Source: Geosiphon pyriformis uo1 (taxonomy: Eukaryota; Fungi; Glomeromycota). Taken from it: a stretch of 8,108 nucleotides of DNA. The stretch is from contig JAAOMT010000624.1 in assembly GCA_016748015.1 (NCBI GenBank), positions 1-8,108 of the forward strand, read 5' to 3'. Positions 1 through 8,108 of this stretch are shown piece after piece. The translations under genes and the position numbers were made by a program. How positions within the stretch are numbered: position 1 is the stretch's first letter; the number at the start of each line of letters is the position of its first letter. The notes beneath the pieces are model-generated. The model was not told the DNA's origin. It made no database searches and saw only the letters and a list, made by a program, of their open reading frames with translations.

Positions 1-1549
1 CAGTAATACAATCCCGGTGTGGAATCACTCATCCTCATCAACTATGACATCCCTCATCCAGTCTCCCCCCCTGGTACAAGTCATGGGCGCTACTTAGATC
101 ACCACATTGTAGATTAGGACTGTCATTGTAGGTTACCATTAACCTATCTTATAGCTCAGTATATGTGTCATGGAGCCTAATACCTAAGACCTTACCACTA
201 TGAATACCCTTACAAAACTCTATGAGGATCTGTAATAACTTGACTACTCCATTACCCTGTCCTGTACTGTAGCATCACTCCTATCCATGACAGTACAATG
301 CTCAACTAACCAACTTACAACTACACAATCCCGGATAAATTCTTGACACATCCCTAGACAGGAGACCACCAGATCCTGTAATAGAGACGGCAATCAAGGA
401 TGACCCATGTACAGGATTACTTTCCCTATCACTAGCAGTACCTTTGTGGTCCCAGCACACTACCTCTCTGACGGCAGCATAGGTAGTCCATTAGTACTCT
501 AACCTACCTACCCTATCACCTTGTCAATAACTACACTGTTATTGGATGACACCCTTACAACTGAGGTCCTGCTGCGACACCATAGCAACATTGGTACACC
601 TTCCACAAGGATTGCAACTACAAACCAGCTAACCTCCCGATGCTGTGCTATACTAGATCCCCGCATGTCTACCTACCTTACCAGGGGAGTTGCTATACCA
701 GTGTGATCCATGACTGACTAGCCCCCATAACCATCAACCTATCCTAGTACCCAAGTCCCCATCATCATCACAATACATCATGCTATCTACCTATCCCTAA
801 CACTTAGAGCACATTACCAGTTCACAGTATCTTTTACACATCCTGTATAGCAGGTACAACATCTCTCATGACAGAGGCCTCTCCATACCTATCCATTATA
901 AGTTACCAGCTCACCAGATCACAAAGGACACTGGGGACAGGGTCTAGAGCATACGTATTGGTAATTACCTGTTATGGCAAGACTATATCATAACCATCCT
1001 AACAATATGTACCACTTACAGGGAGCAAGGTCTATGAAGACTACCCTTGTAAAGGTATGAGTACCACTAGCTAGCTGCAATCCTTGCGGGAGCATGAGCC
1101 CTTACAACAAGGGATTCCCATCTGACAGTCTTCCTATTAAATAACACTGTACAATTTCCAATGGACATCACAATAGATCATACACTATGACACCCCAGAA
1201 CCTATCCACCAATCGACAGGTATGGTATTGGCATTCATATAGTCTACCTAGCATGAACGTATCCCCTGTACCCATCCCCTATCCCTACTACAATTAGGAT
1301 CCTCACAAGATAGGAGTACTCAAGGGTTTATCAGTACAACTCCTACACAGTCCTTACAGGATACCCATACCAACCCTACACTTACTATCCAAAACTAGTA
1401 TAAGGGATCTTGGTCCACTGTCATCTAAAAGGATAGTTGTACAATCCCCATTGTCAGTCTACTACTAACTAGTCAGTCACTGTAGTTATTAGGAGCTAGG
1501 ACTCTCCATATAGGTAGTGTACACAATCATTACAATACAGTACCAGTCC
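1..1549 (+). repeat. Terminal direct repeat, copy 1 (matches 6560-8108)
   Basis: CAGTAATACAATCCCGG at 1 recurs at 6560. The window end (...TACCAGTCC, 8108) matches 1549. The same 61-aa ORF occurs at 521 and 7080 (offset 6559). No mismatches seen in spot checks. Confidence 0.97.
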
Positions 1550-2220
1550 CGTCCGTACAGTACATGTACCCTACTAATACAATGGTAAGACTTGACACCC
1601 AGCTACCACCTATAACCAGATCACCACATTAGCAATCCCAATGATCTACTCCCATTCCTCACATGACAATTACAGACTCTATGCATACTGAGGATACCAC
1701 TAGCCCCAATAGCTCTACTATACTCTAGCAACAACATTACAATTACTGTCATGGCAATACCCTTACCCACAATGACCTAACATCCTAATCCATATTACAG
1801 CTAGCCCTTCCAATTTCCAGGATCACAGCTAACTTGCTAACGCACATCACAATAAGGAATGTACACATGGCACTCACCTCACCTATCTTCTGTACCTGAC
1901 TTATACCTGTAGGATGGGATTTATACTGATGACACCTCCATGAGGGATAGGGATAGGCTATGACCACCAATGGCCATGATACCTCACAAGACTATATAAG
2001 ATCAGCTATACACTTTTACAATCCCTATTGAACACCTGATGACCACCATCCTACAAAATTGGACAGTACAATACCAGATCCATAGCACAATTCCCTGCAG
2101 GCAGCAAAATAGGTAACATAGGAATCTCAACAAAGATAAAAAGGGTTATTATCCCACGCGAGAGCCAAAGGGCCTTGCAGGGTCTAGAAATAGGATATAT
2201 CTGAGGTGTTCACAAAGTTT

Positions 2221-2231
2221 ACCCCCACCCC
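2221..2231 (-). repeat. Left arm of core-bounding inverted repeat (ACCCCCACCCC); UMS/CSB-3-like on minus strand
   Basis: Its reverse complement GGGGTGGGGGT is found exactly at 2507-2517. Confidence 0.85.
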
Positions 2232-2385
2232 GTTTGGGGCAGCCGTAAAAGGGGGGGCCGGGCATAAAGGTCTCAATAGTATTTGATCACGATGGTCCCC
2301 ATATTGACCCCTAATTAGGGCGCCGTAAAACAGGGCCAAGTGCCAAAAAGGGGTGGATAAAAGTGATTACTGATCCCGTTTGGGA
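2228..2385. repeat. Repeated mini-hairpin CCC-GTTT-GGG x2 (2228-2239, 2374-2385)
   Basis: CCCC-GTTT-GGGG and TCCC-GTTT-GGGA share the same 10-mer, and the outer pair changes from C:G to T:A while staying complementary. Confidence 0.8.
2242..2330 (+). repeat. Direct repeat GCCGTAAAA x2 (2242-2250, 2322-2330)
   Basis: Exact 9-mers 80 bp apart. Each is preceded by a CCC..GGG palindrome/hairpin and followed within a few bases by GGGCC. Confidence 0.8.
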
Positions 2386-2506
2386 CCCTTGTGACCCTTA
2401 GAAGGGGGGATTCTTGGGACGCCAGGGGCTCCGCCCCGCCCTCAGGGAAGCCCAGTACCCTAGGGGCGTAGCCCGCCTGGGCGTGGCCCTCTCTCACGGG
2501 TCGTTG

Positions 2507-2517
2507 GGGGTGGGGGT
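2507..2517 (+). repeat. Right arm of core-bounding inverted repeat (GGGGTGGGGGT)
   Basis: Exact reverse complement of 2221-2231. Confidence 0.85.
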
Positions 2518-2860
2518 CTAGCTAGCGTATTGATATTAGGGGGTCATGTCCAATCCAAGTCCCATTACAAAGGTAGTTCTGGAACAGACTGGAAACTCTA
2601 GTCCCATTAGCCTACCATACTACACAGAATCACAATTACCACAAGGGTTATCTTGTAGGTCTTGGGGGATTGGGTATGGGCTATGGTAAACCTGCGTATG
2701 TGTAGAGCATGACGTATAGGATATGTTGCATGATTCTGGGTCACTCAATGATCGTAATTACTAGGTATCTCAAACTAGATCCCAGTACATAGCTACTAAA
2801 TCACCAATGTAAGATGATAAACGTCCTGATACTTACCAATTAGGACTGTAGGATAGTACC

Positions 2861-2926
2861 TGGGACCCTGTACGTAATACCAGTACCACTAGCCCGCCAC
2901 CATGACGGGTCGGGATCCTATAGGAT
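2861..2926 (+). repeat. Condensed, collinear degenerate copy of core motifs
   Basis: TGGGACCCT (2861; core 2381), CCAGTACC (2880; core 2452), TAGCCCGCC (2890; core 2469) and ACGGGTCG (2905; core 2496) occur in the same order and orientation. Confidence 0.7.
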
Positions 2927-5900
2927 TAAGCTAGCTAAACCCTGTGTTACAAGTCTACCATTGTTACAATGATTCACGCATAACCTGTGAACGCCCTCCT
3001 ACCTAATGTGAGTACTTGACTCACCTCCCCATATCCTATAGTACTACCCATAGCCTAACTGTCTATCACTTCACAATCCAGTACATGATTAACTGCTGCA
3101 TGTCAATGGTAAAAATACTCATGCTGTAACCTTACCATGACCACTCACTCTACAATAGCCACAACATAAGGTATCTCTATCTCTAGCTAGGAGTTTAACA
3201 CTATCCTTATCCTTATCACTGTCCATGTGTAAGATATATAGCTACCAACCTAATACAAGGCTAAGATCTGATCTATGGTACAACTACATAGGATCCATGT
3301 TAGATAGAGACTGAGTTACTAACTCTCTTCATATATGTAATATCTTAGAGGGGCTAGGTGCCTATAACAGTATCACATAAATCAATAGCTCCCTCAAGTA
3401 CTGTCAACTGGATAGTCTACCACCCAGACCACTAATATGATCTACATTACCAGTGAGGATACTTTACATATACCATATTTACAGGTCCCATCCACTGTTT
3501 CAGGTTATCATTGAATAATCCAACCATACTACAATACACATTAACTTTTAAGATAATCCTAGGGCTTCCACTCCCCCAGTGGTACTTGACAACACTATAA
3601 ACTAAATATTTCAGCATTTACAGTAAGGTAGACTGCTATGGGGGCATGAGGGGGATGGATGACTAAGAATGTCCACACAATATCAGGATTCCATACTGTC
3701 CTCAACTACCTCTCAATCTAGACTGTGCTATAGGTACCTAGCTAAGGGTCCAGATCCCTAGTAAGTACACAATACTAGGTAAGATGATGCCCATCACAGG
3801 TAACAGTTCCAATGCCTTAACAACTCCTAACTACTGACTACAATGGTATGAACACTAGCTAATATCCATCAGACTATCTGACGCTGAGTAGCTATAGCCG
3901 CCGGATCCCTAGGATGTGTGGTGTACTGTGAACAGTATAATGAGGACCTTAAACTAGTATGTACTACTAAGATTGCAGATAACATCCTCACCAGATCCAT
4001 TTAGGGACTATGACAGATGCGGACATTGGATGGTGATGTGCTATATAGCCAGTAGTCTAGCAGCGATCCACTGTTATGAGTAAGTACTAGGATAATTGTG
4101 ACGATGTCAGATAACTTTACTCAGGACCTGCATCTATATGGGCTACTAGCTAACTGAGATCCTGTTGTACATCTCTCAGGAGTGGTAGAGTATGGGTACT
4201 ACTAGGTTAGCTACAGGTACTGGTGATAGAACATACACAATCATTGTAAGGATTAGCTACCTATCGAGCATATCATTATCAATCAAGTCATAAATTTGGT
4301 ATGTACTACATGAGAGTCTCATGGAGCCGTAAGTCCTGTCCTCTCTACTATATCTGATAGACCACTAGGTGATAGGGGACTACTACAGTCATGAAGGGAG
4401 TATGTAAATATTCTACCATCCCCTGATAGACACCTAAGTACTTGGAATCTAGTGATGCTAAGGGTTATCAGTACATCTGGTAAGTAACAGACTCTACAAT
4501 ACCTATCCTGAGGTTGCTATACTTCATCATGGAGGAGCCTTAGCAGTACCATAAGTCATTAGTAGTGTGGAGGGAGACTCCATTGCAATGCCAACGCATA
4601 CTATCTAGCTATCGTATACCTAATATCATCTACCATTGTACACACCAACATTGATGTAGTGTTAACAGGGCTACGATCTGGAATCACACCATAACAGGAG
4701 TCTCCTATAATTACAGGATTTACTCTAGCAAGGACCCCAACACTGGCAGCAACCAGCTACTCTTACAGTACACTAACAACTAACACTCTAGCTCACTGTA
4801 ATGGCTAAGGGTAGGGGGGTATGATCTAGCATTTGACTCCACACCGCAAGTATGATGGTCAGGTATAGAAACTGTCATATTCTGATCAGCATTCCCAAGT
4901 AGGGTACTTAGCCTCACCATCAGTAGCTAACAGACTCCAAGGATAGGGTACTACCATTCTGTTGTGGATATTCTATCAAGACTTTGATTGTCAGTATCTT
5001 TAGATGATTGGATCTAACATGTGCTTGTATTAGGATGCTAAGCTAAAACCCAGTCACTTGTGAATTGGATCAATGCTCATGCTGGCAGGGTGCTATAGCT
5101 AAGGAAATGCTTTACTTGTATAGTAGTAGTACGCGGGCTACCAATCATCCAAGTCAATCACTAGGGGTACTACTAGCCCCTACTAATGTACAAGACACAT
5201 GACTGTCAGGGGGTCTAGCCATCCAACTGTGATCAGTACCATGTCAAATCCTACTTAGACAATGCACCATGTCATATATTTACAACAGGATTACCCCTCC
5301 ACCTCCCACTACCAACCATACCAAATACCAGAGTGATGGCAGTAATGACCCCTCACCATTGTACATTTATAAGTCCCAACAAGGGTATAGTACTGCTGCT
5401 ATATACAGACCCTGTAACATTCATGATCCACTAGGCACCATTACAGAGGATACTGGTACCTATGACTAGTATGTATCTACCTTAGCCTAGCTAGCATATA
5501 CCAGTACCTACCAGTCCCTGTACCAATGAATAGGATCAGTTTTAAGGATTGGTAATGTACTGACAATGTTTAATGACACGGTTATAGTACCTATTCTATT
5601 GGGGTACTGATCCATTGTAGCTTACCTAGCATCATACCTAAGAACTAGGGACTGGCTAGCTACCTTAAATCATGATAGAGAGCACAACCAATCCACCATA
5701 CAACCTCTACTGATCTCCTGAGGGGTTTTGCATGTACAGTAACACTTCCAATGCTATGCTATCCTCTACCCATTACCATATTACCAGATGACCATGAGCT
5801 ATGGATCACTATGGGGGGGGCATAGACTAGCTAAGTACCATGAGATCTGCCCCTGTTACAACCTAATGCTATGTTAGTACCAAGTACCAGTCCAATGGAT

Positions 5901-6005
5901 ACCCTATCCGAGGAGCTGAGCTATAGTACTATCACAACCATTGTGTAGAGCGTAGATCAACTAGGATGTACAAGGATCACCAAGACTACCCTGTTAACAC
6001 TATGG

Positions 6006-6032
6006 ACCAATCTACCAATCTACCAATCTACC
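6006..6032 (+). repeat. Short tandem repeat (ACCAATCT)x3 + ACC
   Basis: Read directly: ACCAATCT ACCAATCT ACCAATCT ACC. Confidence 0.9.
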
Positions 6033-6559
6033 TAGGAATTCTATGATCAACTGTAATGCAAGAGTGTTAGCTTACCTCCACTGAGCTATATACCGACCCG
6101 GACCCAGTACCCTGTACCTAATGCTACCCTAATAAACATCCAACATACAGTGTAATGGTCAGCAACCTGTCTTATAGCTAATACTCTTAGGATGAACAGG
6201 CGGATCTAACCATTTAACCTTAACAATGGCTGTATGGCTAAGTAACTGTATCACTCCTCAGTACGCTATGCCAACCCCTAAGATTATGTGTAATAAGAGA
6301 GATACCCCAATCAACTATAAGTGATGTGTGCAGTAATGGATATCCACAATGTGTACCTAGCTAATACTCACATTGGTGTGAGAGGCCTGTAACAATAGTC
6401 ATCAAGGTATTGTACACATCCTAAGTACAGTGTGATAGGACCTATCCTAGTGCAATAGCTACTAGATCCTCCTATGCTCTACTACTAAGGAGGTTGCCCT
6501 AGTATCTCAGTATACCAAGTACAGTACTGGAGGGTCATCAAGATCACCATTGAGATGTA

Positions 6560-8108
6560 CAGTAATACAATCCCGGTGTGGAATCACTCATCCTCATCAA
6601 CTATGACATCCCTCATCCAGTCTCCCCCCCTGGTACAAGTCATGGGCGCTACTTAGATCACCACATTGTAGATTAGGACTGTCATTGTAGGTTACCATTA
6701 ACCTATCTTATAGCTCAGTATATGTGTCATGGAGCCTAATACCTAAGACCTTACCACTATGAATACCCTTACAAAACTCTATGAGGATCTGTAATAACTT
6801 GACTACTCCATTACCCTGTCCTGTACTGTAGCATCACTCCTATCCATGACAGTACAATGCTCAACTAACCAACTTACAACTACACAATCCCGGATAAATT
6901 CTTGACACATCCCTAGACAGGAGACCACCAGATCCTGTAATAGAGACGGCAATCAAGGATGACCCATGTACAGGATTACTTTCCCTATCACTAGCAGTAC
7001 CTTTGTGGTCCCAGCACACTACCTCTCTGACGGCAGCATAGGTAGTCCATTAGTACTCTAACCTACCTACCCTATCACCTTGTCAATAACTACACTGTTA
7101 TTGGATGACACCCTTACAACTGAGGTCCTGCTGCGACACCATAGCAACATTGGTACACCTTCCACAAGGATTGCAACTACAAACCAGCTAACCTCCCGAT
7201 GCTGTGCTATACTAGATCCCCGCATGTCTACCTACCTTACCAGGGGAGTTGCTATACCAGTGTGATCCATGACTGACTAGCCCCCATAACCATCAACCTA
7301 TCCTAGTACCCAAGTCCCCATCATCATCACAATACATCATGCTATCTACCTATCCCTAACACTTAGAGCACATTACCAGTTCACAGTATCTTTTACACAT
7401 CCTGTATAGCAGGTACAACATCTCTCATGACAGAGGCCTCTCCATACCTATCCATTATAAGTTACCAGCTCACCAGATCACAAAGGACACTGGGGACAGG
7501 GTCTAGAGCATACGTATTGGTAATTACCTGTTATGGCAAGACTATATCATAACCATCCTAACAATATGTACCACTTACAGGGAGCAAGGTCTATGAAGAC
7601 TACCCTTGTAAAGGTATGAGTACCACTAGCTAGCTGCAATCCTTGCGGGAGCATGAGCCCTTACAACAAGGGATTCCCATCTGACAGTCTTCCTATTAAA
7701 TAACACTGTACAATTTCCAATGGACATCACAATAGATCATACACTATGACACCCCAGAACCTATCCACCAATCGACAGGTATGGTATTGGCATTCATATA
7801 GTCTACCTAGCATGAACGTATCCCCTGTACCCATCCCCTATCCCTACTACAATTAGGATCCTCACAAGATAGGAGTACTCAAGGGTTTATCAGTACAACT
7901 CCTACACAGTCCTTACAGGATACCCATACCAACCCTACACTTACTATCCAAAACTAGTATAAGGGATCTTGGTCCACTGTCATCTAAAAGGATAGTTGTA
8001 CAATCCCCATTGTCAGTCTACTACTAACTAGTCAGTCACTGTAGTTATTAGGAGCTAGGACTCTCCATATAGGTAGTGTACACAATCATTACAATACAGT
8101 ACCAGTCC
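6560..8108 (+). repeat. Terminal direct repeat, copy 2 (circular overlap or start of next tandem unit)
   Basis: Matches 1-1549 at a constant offset of 6559. Confidence 0.97.

Follow-up and report, generated by a model that had tools for sequence, protein, structure and literature searches.

The 8,108-nucleotide contig JAAOMT010000624.1 of the Geosiphon pyriformis assembly GCA_016748015.1 was analysed over its full length (positions 1-8108, here called the window), which is the entire record and has no flanking sequence. It carries a 6,559-bp repeat unit that encodes no protein and no known RNA. The explanation that we favour, tentatively and with rather less than even confidence, is that the contig represents, in linear form, a small, multi-copy, trans-replicated non-coding circle, belonging either to the fungus or to a co-cultured eukaryote. 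The contig is a real oddity, being unusual and having no relatives found.

Bases 1-1549 are identical to bases 6560-8108 at 1549 of 1549 positions, with no mismatches and a copy spacing of 6,559. The repeat unit is set by this terminal redundancy; one complete unit, either circular-mapping or head-to-tail, occupies 1-6559, the second copy of the first 1,549 bases occupies 6560-8108, and the contig as a whole holds 1.24 units. An earlier note on this DNA had described a 1,549-bp terminal redundancy and a 6,559-bp unit, with the remainder unique and non-repetitive, and both descriptions hold: the identity is exact at the two ends, and a self-blastn comparison and a search for tandem arrays bear out the second. 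The former, at word size 7 over the whole unit, gave no internal repeat with E < 0.4, and the latter gave no array above a score of 54, the largest being 27 bp. Being without internal repeats, the unit is unlike satellites and unlike the repeat-rich constant regions of Diplonema papillatum. The terminal redundancy suggests that the molecule may be circular. A contig of 1.24 units without flanks is what an overlap assembler might be expected to produce from a small circle and is less expected from a long tandem array, and so, to an extent that depends on the assembler, it would fit a monomer circle better than a long array.

The longest open reading frame (ORF) from a start codon in the unit is 66 amino acids (aa), the value that the earlier note had given as its upper limit, while stop-to-stop frames reach at most 78 codons under genetic codes 1 and 11. 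This maximum is shorter than 98.7% of first-order Markov simulations (mean 108; 1.3% as short) and below all mononucleotide shuffles (mean 123; none as short). As the frames are shorter than chance, stops are over-represented, and the stop codons in excess are chiefly TAG and its complement CTA. Alternative genetic codes were considered and rejected, since they lengthen frames no further than chance would, by leaving fewer stops, and bring no period-3 signal: reading TGA as Trp gives a longest frame of 144 codons against a simulated mean of 143.9, and the 353 codons obtained with the ciliate code are about the yield expected from one remaining stop codon. The protein-domain scan covered all 104 stop-free pieces of at least 30 aa, each compared with Pfam. 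The best match had E = 0.0064 to an irrelevant family, and no Rep, capsid, transposase, reverse transcriptase, retroelement or organellar family was present among the pieces, in agreement with the earlier claim that the first three of these are missing. The period-3 signal is also absent, with a whole-unit ratio of 0.27 compared to approximately 37 for simulated coding sequence of the same length, and maxima of 3.2 in 600-nucleotide (nt) windows and 2.4 in 1,200-nt windows compared to simulated medians of 4.1 and 7.5; this test rules out coding stretches of about 1 kb or more, and modules of 300 nt or less are beyond its reach.

No tRNA was detected in the unit, including with the permissive mitochondrial modes of ARAGORN, and no Rfam family was found across it at E <= 1. 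A scan for bacterial promoters returned promoter-like sites only at shuffle level, and a scan for bacterial terminators returned 0 terminator-like sites where 3.1 were expected. When 150-nt windows were folded the mean z was +0.34, no better than shuffles, and a viroid-like or ribozyme circular RNA, a reading that would apply if the contig came from RNA, was rejected on this value together with the blank Rfam search. The sole fold outlier among the 176 windows scanned is 4576-4725, where a long-range stem, GGAGACUCC / GGAGUCUCC at 4572-4705, encloses a branched fold on the plus strand. On refolding of 4560-4720 it reached z = -3.0, with 1 of 200 shuffles as good, which is within multiple-testing noise, and it was therefore rejected as a structured RNA.

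The GenBank record places five spliced "hypothetical protein" models on the contig. Two of the five are G9A89_000331 (P0001; 74 aa, two exons, 5199-5469, plus strand) and G9A89_000330 (P0002; 68 aa, spliced, 2620-3051, minus strand). Neither has a Pfam domain, both are singletons among 5.8 billion protein clusters, and the former shows no period-3 signal. The other three are annotated as a spliced 138-aa model at 311-2265 on the minus strand, whose ATG at 2263-2265 lies inside the GC-rich island described below, and two spliced models in the duplicated end, of 170 aa at 6708-7428 (minus strand) and 75 aa at 7533-7957 (plus strand); these last two differ from the models on the same sequence in the first copy. 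All five are probably over-predictions on non-coding DNA, and as such they probably inflate the orphan-gene count of the Geosiphon proteome. When the longest stop-free piece (5233-5466) was used in a word search, the one protein returned was G9A89_000331. The 17 ATG-initiated ORFs had no exact match in a collection of 15 billion proteins, because the deposited models are spliced. The word search with the ORF in the island (2318-2521, minus strand) gave no candidate, a result of little weight as no deposited model covers that stretch, and degenerate back-translated scans of two ORFs found no relative in viral contigs.

Relatives were also sought at the DNA level in viral, metagenome and prokaryote-genome collections, among which the Geosiphon assembly is not included. 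A 24-mer from the island (2421-2444) had no exact match in the viral, metagenome or genome contigs; nor did one from an arm of the unit (5291-5314) in the metagenome and viral contigs, nor a second arm 24-mer (681-704) in the genome contigs. A blastn search in its distant mode gave no match to plasmids and phages.

The unit has one GC-rich island, at 2221-2517 (GC 0.61, CpG observed/expected 0.56), a candidate cis-acting control region which holds 15 of the 64 CpGs of the unit. A perfect 11-nt inverted repeat brackets the island, with one arm, ACCCCCACCCC, at 2221-2231 and the other, GGGGTGGGGGT, at 2507-2517; the arms take the form C5AC4 / G4TG5. Between the brackets, alignment of the plus strand over 2222-2447 shows three degenerate tandem units of 66-80 bp (2222-2301, 2302-2367 and 2368-2447) which have the blocks TGAYCCC / GTTTGGG / CCGTAAAAGGGGGG-like in common, and an exact 10-mer, CCCGTTTGGG, is present at 2229 and again at 2375. 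The most CpG-dense stretch, 2421-2489, contains GC-box-like CCGCCCC runs and a doublet, GGGCGTAGCCC / GGGCGTGGCCC, with the consensus GGGCGTRGCCC; 8 CpGs fall in the 120-nt window starting at 2401. The earlier note had described one distinct, structured, GC-rich core at 2090-2610. There is indeed a single core, but its extent is narrower, and whilst the iterated units and the bracketing inverted repeat provide an organisation of a kind, its fold (z = +0.07) gives no thermodynamic structure.

Three canonical G-quadruplex-type motifs were observed in the unit, at 2236-2262 (plus strand), 2434-2460 (minus strand) and 1263-1285 (minus strand), two of which are inside the island and on opposite strands. 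Just to the right of the island an exact 10-mer, AGTCCCATTA, occurs twice, at 2558-2567 and 2600-2609, 42 nt apart, and the GTCCCA within it is the reverse complement of the TGGGAC at 2415-2420. This arrangement could be due to chance or could represent short inverted termini. A full-text literature search with five of the island motifs returned no paper.

Within the unit G+C is 43.2% (A 30.4, C 24.9, G 18.3, T 26.3), whereas the Geosiphon assembly has 29.25% G+C and consists of 64% repeats (PMC9453076, Table 1), which suggests that the element lies outside the nuclear mutational environment of the fungus. Outside the island the dinucleotide signature is extreme, in that CpG (0.18), AA (0.59), TT (0.53) and GpC (0.68) are depleted and TpA (1.40) and GG (1.43) are enriched, and among the trinucleotides TAG/CTA and GTA/TAC occur at approximately 1.9 times expectation and AAA/TTT at 0.24. 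GATC and GTAC are about two-fold enriched and AGCT is enriched, while ATAT, TATA and GGCC are depleted. Runs of four or more A or T are rare, with six of the 12 A-runs in or beside the island (within 2106-2362), and runs of G and of C up to 8 are present. No further word stands out under a third-order Markov model, so that the sequence behaves as unique DNA on which strong 3- to 4-mer biases have acted. We know of no genome with this dinucleotide signature.

Several origins for this composition were considered and rejected. The indices for repeat-induced point mutation are borderline (TpA/ApT 1.23; (CpA+TpG)/(ApC+GpT) 1.00), but the unit shows no depletion of CpA/TpG and no lowered G+C. A homopolymer-compressed or designed sequence is ruled out by the G and C runs up to 8, and for a mirror or reversed sequence the natural original would carry the extreme deficit on GpC, which is implausible. 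Human origin was set aside as the sequence was deposited in a fungal assembly and is without the A/T-run-rich character of vertebrate DNA.

The two strands of the unit are markedly asymmetric. The plus strand is A+C-rich, with a GC skew of -0.3 to -0.69 and a positive AT skew, from around 6500 through the junction to around 2050, and the A+C bias covers about three quarters of the unit and reverses at the island. A polarity model trained on the strongly skewed arm and applied to the rest of the unit gave the same orientation at 2900-3600, 4500-4800 and 5100-6200, a reversed orientation in the island (2100-2600), and a weak or reversed one at 3900-4500, 4800-5100 and 6300-6500. The unit can thus be divided into a strongly A+C-rich arm on the plus strand (1-2050, continuing from about 6500 across the junction) and an arm with weaker, patchy skew (2519-6456). 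The palindrome TAGCTA is found 21 times in the unit where approximately 3.5 would be expected from the dinucleotides, and 20 of these are in the arm 2519-6456, which leaves a single copy, at 1068, for the strongly C-skewed arm; word usage, like skew, therefore sets the two arms apart. Strand asymmetry of this size is far above what is expected of nuclear DNA, and the coupling of A>T with C>G at this magnitude is characteristic of the light strand of animal mitochondrial DNA and not of nuclear DNA.

In the explanation that we favour, the contig would derive from a covalently circular, multi-copy DNA of 6,559 bp or, less likely, from short head-to-tail multimers of the unit. This would be eukaryotic DNA which co-purified with G. 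pyriformis from a non-axenic culture, and its host may be either the organellar or extrachromosomal pool of the fungus itself or a micro-eukaryote in that culture. As no protein or known RNA is encoded, we infer that it is copied and kept by enzymes supplied in trans. On its anatomy, the island of about 300 bp would be the likeliest cis-acting region, an origin and/or a promoter. The flip of the A+C bias at the island suggests, by analogy with animal mitochondrial DNA, that strand-asymmetric and essentially unidirectional replication or transcription may start there; the G+T-rich strand would then be single-stranded for a time and would accumulate C-to-T and A-to-G deamination. The remaining 6.2 kb or so is best read as filler and not as hidden genes, and it would have evolved under an unusual mutational regime of CpG loss, TpA gain and A/T-run avoidance. 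The alternative offered by the earlier note, an undescribed helper-dependent circle, is close to this explanation and compatible with everything seen.

A number of observations weigh against a trans-replicated circle. The terminal redundancy could reflect a tandem array as well as a circle. Searches of the DNA collections, which do not include the Geosiphon assembly, and of the protein collections turned up no sibling or relative, and there is thus no evolutionary conservation pointing to a function for any stretch of its sequence. In folding, neither the island nor the remaining sequence outdoes shuffles, and beyond the main arm the skew is patchy and is not a smooth gradient. None of the kinetoplastid, Namystynia, CRESS and bacterial scans brought out a known origin, promoter or conserved-block motif. 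Finally, the fungus and a co-cultured eukaryote are both candidate hosts.

If the unit is a true circle, it would be a replicon that persists without encoding anything and so a clean case in which to ask what cis-elements are sufficient for maintenance. Replicons without any coding content are not known outside a few eccentric organelle genomes and the mitochondrial derivatives of plants and yeast. A true circle could likewise point to a eukaryote not yet sampled, or to a DNA species so far unknown in the early-diverging mycorrhizal fungi. A bolder version, which we consider doubtful, is that a gene-free 6.6-kb circle with its own mutational signature and an iteron-like island is maintained in multiple copies in trans in a glomeromycotan fungus or an associated protist, as a selfish replicon or an "empty" organellar chromosome unrelated to the described families, and possibly as the first member to come to light of a multipartite organelle genome from a terrestrial lineage not yet sampled. 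At a more practical level, a public fungal genome contains five probably false "hypothetical proteins" on a contig that may be outside the nuclear genome, and such models matter for orphan-gene and gene-age studies which use the Geosiphon proteome, e.g. PMC10234402.

The main rival to a circle is a nuclear tandem or long terminal repeat (LTR)-derived repeat of Geosiphon or of a contaminating eukaryote, which we regard as possible though clearly less probable. It could take the form of a large-unit tandem, of an assembler loop from a non-autonomous (LARD-like) LTR element, or of a real 1-LTR circle, and the apparent circle would then stem from the assembly graph or have arisen in the course of retrotransposition as a by-product. 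That 64% of the Geosiphon assembly is repeats (PMC9453076) is in keeping with this, as is the CpG observed/expected of 0.18 with its TpG/CpA excess, the classic trace of methylated repeats. The G+C of the unit, 14 points above that of the fungal genome, argues in the other direction, as do the 1.24 units without flanks and a strand bias which is very strong for such DNA.

The case for an LTR element specifically is drawn from the island, where the polypurine blocks (AGAAGGGGGG, AAAAGGGGGGG), the GC-box-like runs and the direct repeats of about 75 bp resemble a polypurine tract and the U3 region of an LTR; an A-rich, G-poor plus strand is also seen in retroelements. The polypurine-like block is, however, present three times in iterated units, which suggests iterons over a single priming tract. 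No trace of a reverse transcriptase, integrase, protease, gag or transposase was found at E <= 1 in the 104 pieces. The boundaries of the redundancy do not have TG...CA termini, as the repeat begins CAGTAA and ends CAGTCC, and there is no TGG-type primer-binding site after 1549 (CGTCCGTACAG) and no purine tract before 6560 (GAGATGTAC), with the reverse strand being no better. This test of termini is valid for the redundancy boundaries and not for an LTR elsewhere inside the unit, an idea which the island polypurine blocks, GC boxes and ~75-bp repeats keep alive. The unit therefore resembles LARD elements and 1-LTR circles in its several-kb non-coding interior, its terminal repeat or circular graph, its CpG depletion and its polypurine and GC-box-like motifs, but differs from LARD elements in that its redundancy boundaries lack LTR termini, a primer-binding site and a polypurine tract, no retroelement protein remnant was found, and its G+C is far from that of the host.

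It is very unlikely, in our judgement, that the unit is a gene-free sub-genomic circle from the mitochondrial DNA of the fungus itself, akin to the rho-minus petites of yeast or the senDNA of Podospora, which are amplified and have an ori-like GC cluster. A fungal assembly as the source, a strand asymmetry of organellar magnitude and a G+C of about 43%, which is within the range of glomeromycotan mitochondrial DNA (e.g. approximately 45% in Gigaspora), are consistent with such a circle, and the GC-cluster island with its inverted G/C-run arms recalls the ori/rep elements of yeast. Yet it would be unusual for 6.5 kb of fungal mitochondrial DNA to lack every gene, tRNA, intron ORF and piece of rRNA, and the avoidance of A/T runs (AA/TT 0.55, AAA/TTT 0.24) is opposite to the habit of fungal mitochondrial spacers. 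Yeast rho-minus petites and ori/rep elements and the non-coding mitochondrial plasmids of plants are likewise gene-free circles or tandems kept by a cis-acting GC-cluster origin and host enzymes; the petites and plant plasmids derive from or resemble AT-rich host mitochondrial DNA, whereas the unit avoids A/T runs and has no known parent.

The earlier note had read the unit as one chromosome of a multipartite organellar genome of the diplonemid, kinetoplastid or dinoflagellate kind, with cryptic information (guide RNAs, or short, edited and trans-spliced modules), and an "empty" member of such a genome would be a further version of this. We consider this unlikely: the size fits diplonemids, but the motifs, modules, repeats and habitat lend it no support. 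At 6,559 bp the unit is within the 4-12 kbp range of diplonemid chromosomes (PMC5658414, PMC7049700). Chromosomes without a module are documented in Sulcionema, which has 16 of them, and in its class D a short region is shared while 83-90% of the circle is unique (PMC7049700). The organellar magnitude of the strand asymmetry points the same way.

The unit yielded no fragment of a mitochondrial or plastid gene, no tRNA and no piece of rRNA. For a diplonemid-type gene module in particular, there was no mitochondrial family in the 104 pieces of at least 30 aa and no rRNA, in a scan that modules under about 90 nt, interrupted by TGA or edited would escape. Dispersed or tandem repeats over 40 bp, in which the constant regions of D. 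papillatum are rich (PMC3035467), are absent, the largest tandem array being the 27-bp one given above. A diplonemid constant region, defined as over 90% identity across more than 100 bp, is common to the chromosomes of one organism, and such regions are not conserved between species (PMC5658414), so that sequence similarity cannot settle whether the unit is diplonemid. If dozens of annotated siblings shared 5199-5469 or 2620-3051 they would yield near-identical gene models, and the singleton status of G9A89_000331 and G9A89_000330 argues against this. The source is a terrestrial, soil-surface fungus culture. Diplonemids and peridinin dinoflagellates are aquatic and mostly marine, and a culture of a soil-surface fungus with Nostoc is an unlikely home for them.

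Motifs of the individual families were found at no more than chance level. For the universal minicircle 12-mer of kinetoplastids, conserved sequence block 3 (CSB-3, GGGGTTGGTGTA), the best matches have 2 mismatches, at 2220-2231 and 6267-6278, both on the minus strand; two such matches compare with 1.68 expected, and 104 of 200 shuffles equal that number. CSB-1 (AGGGGCGTTC / GGGCGT), which in minicircles stands in a set order and distance to CSB-3, has four 2-mismatch matches against 3.13 expected, and no CSB-3 accompanies the GGGCGT doublet at 2464 and 2479. The upstream motif of class X in the hemistasiid Namystynia, GGGCCAAAAA, has three matches at up to 2 mismatches against 3.15 expected, and its downstream-of-cassette motif, TTTTGGGCC, has no match. 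Neither photosystem, ATP synthase, rRNA nor tRNA genes, by which a dinoflagellate plastid circle other than an "empty" one would be recognised, were found in the unit. Two other kinds of small circle were also tried and rejected: a CRESS/geminivirus-type rolling-circle replicon or satellite, as the nonanucleotides NAGTATTAC / TAATATTAC are absent and there is no Rep domain, and a gene-bearing mitochondrial minicircle of the type found in lice, red algae and Globodera, among others, as there is no intact mitochondrial gene or tRNA.

The module-less and long-cassette mitochondrial chromosomes of Sulcionema specki (classes A and D) are also small circles, a few kb in size, in which no gene can be recognised and whose content is believed to be limited to origin and promoter signals (PMC7049700), but the unit has no constant-region repeats and no module, and comes from a terrestrial fungal source. 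The minicircles of kinetoplast DNA likewise have no genes by ORF criteria and one conserved control region each, and in some species reach several kb in size; the unit differs in having neither GGGGTTGGTGTA nor CSB-1 beyond chance and in avoiding A-tracts outside the island, whereas kinetoplast minicircles are A-tract-rich and AT-rich. The "empty" plastid minicircles of peridinin dinoflagellates (PMC1679814) are likewise circular and gene-free, and their non-coding core is conserved. Blocks of the AAAAGGGGGGG type in the island bring to mind the G-run and A-run blocks of dinoflagellate cores. Those minicircles are typically 2-3 kb, compared to the larger unit described here, and a soil-surface culture is not their habitat.

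It is more improbable still that the contig is an artefact, be it non-biological DNA or a chimera from assembly or whole-genome amplification, whose redundancy was made by the assembler. The lack of a relative in the collections searched and the odd composition, with its few A/T runs, few CpGs and many stops, could be taken this way. However, the G and C runs up to 8 fit neither homopolymer compression nor a storage code, skew and word usage are heterogeneous from region to region, the island is organised, and an exact overlap of 1,549 bp is the mark expected of a real repeat or circle and not of a chimera. The unit also has natural-looking microsatellites of the slippage type, all of them small: (ACCAATCT) x3.4 at 6006-6032, (ATTACCAT) x3 at 5772-5795 and (TATCCT) x2.7 at 3202-3217. 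These hint at natural replicating DNA rather than a designed construct.

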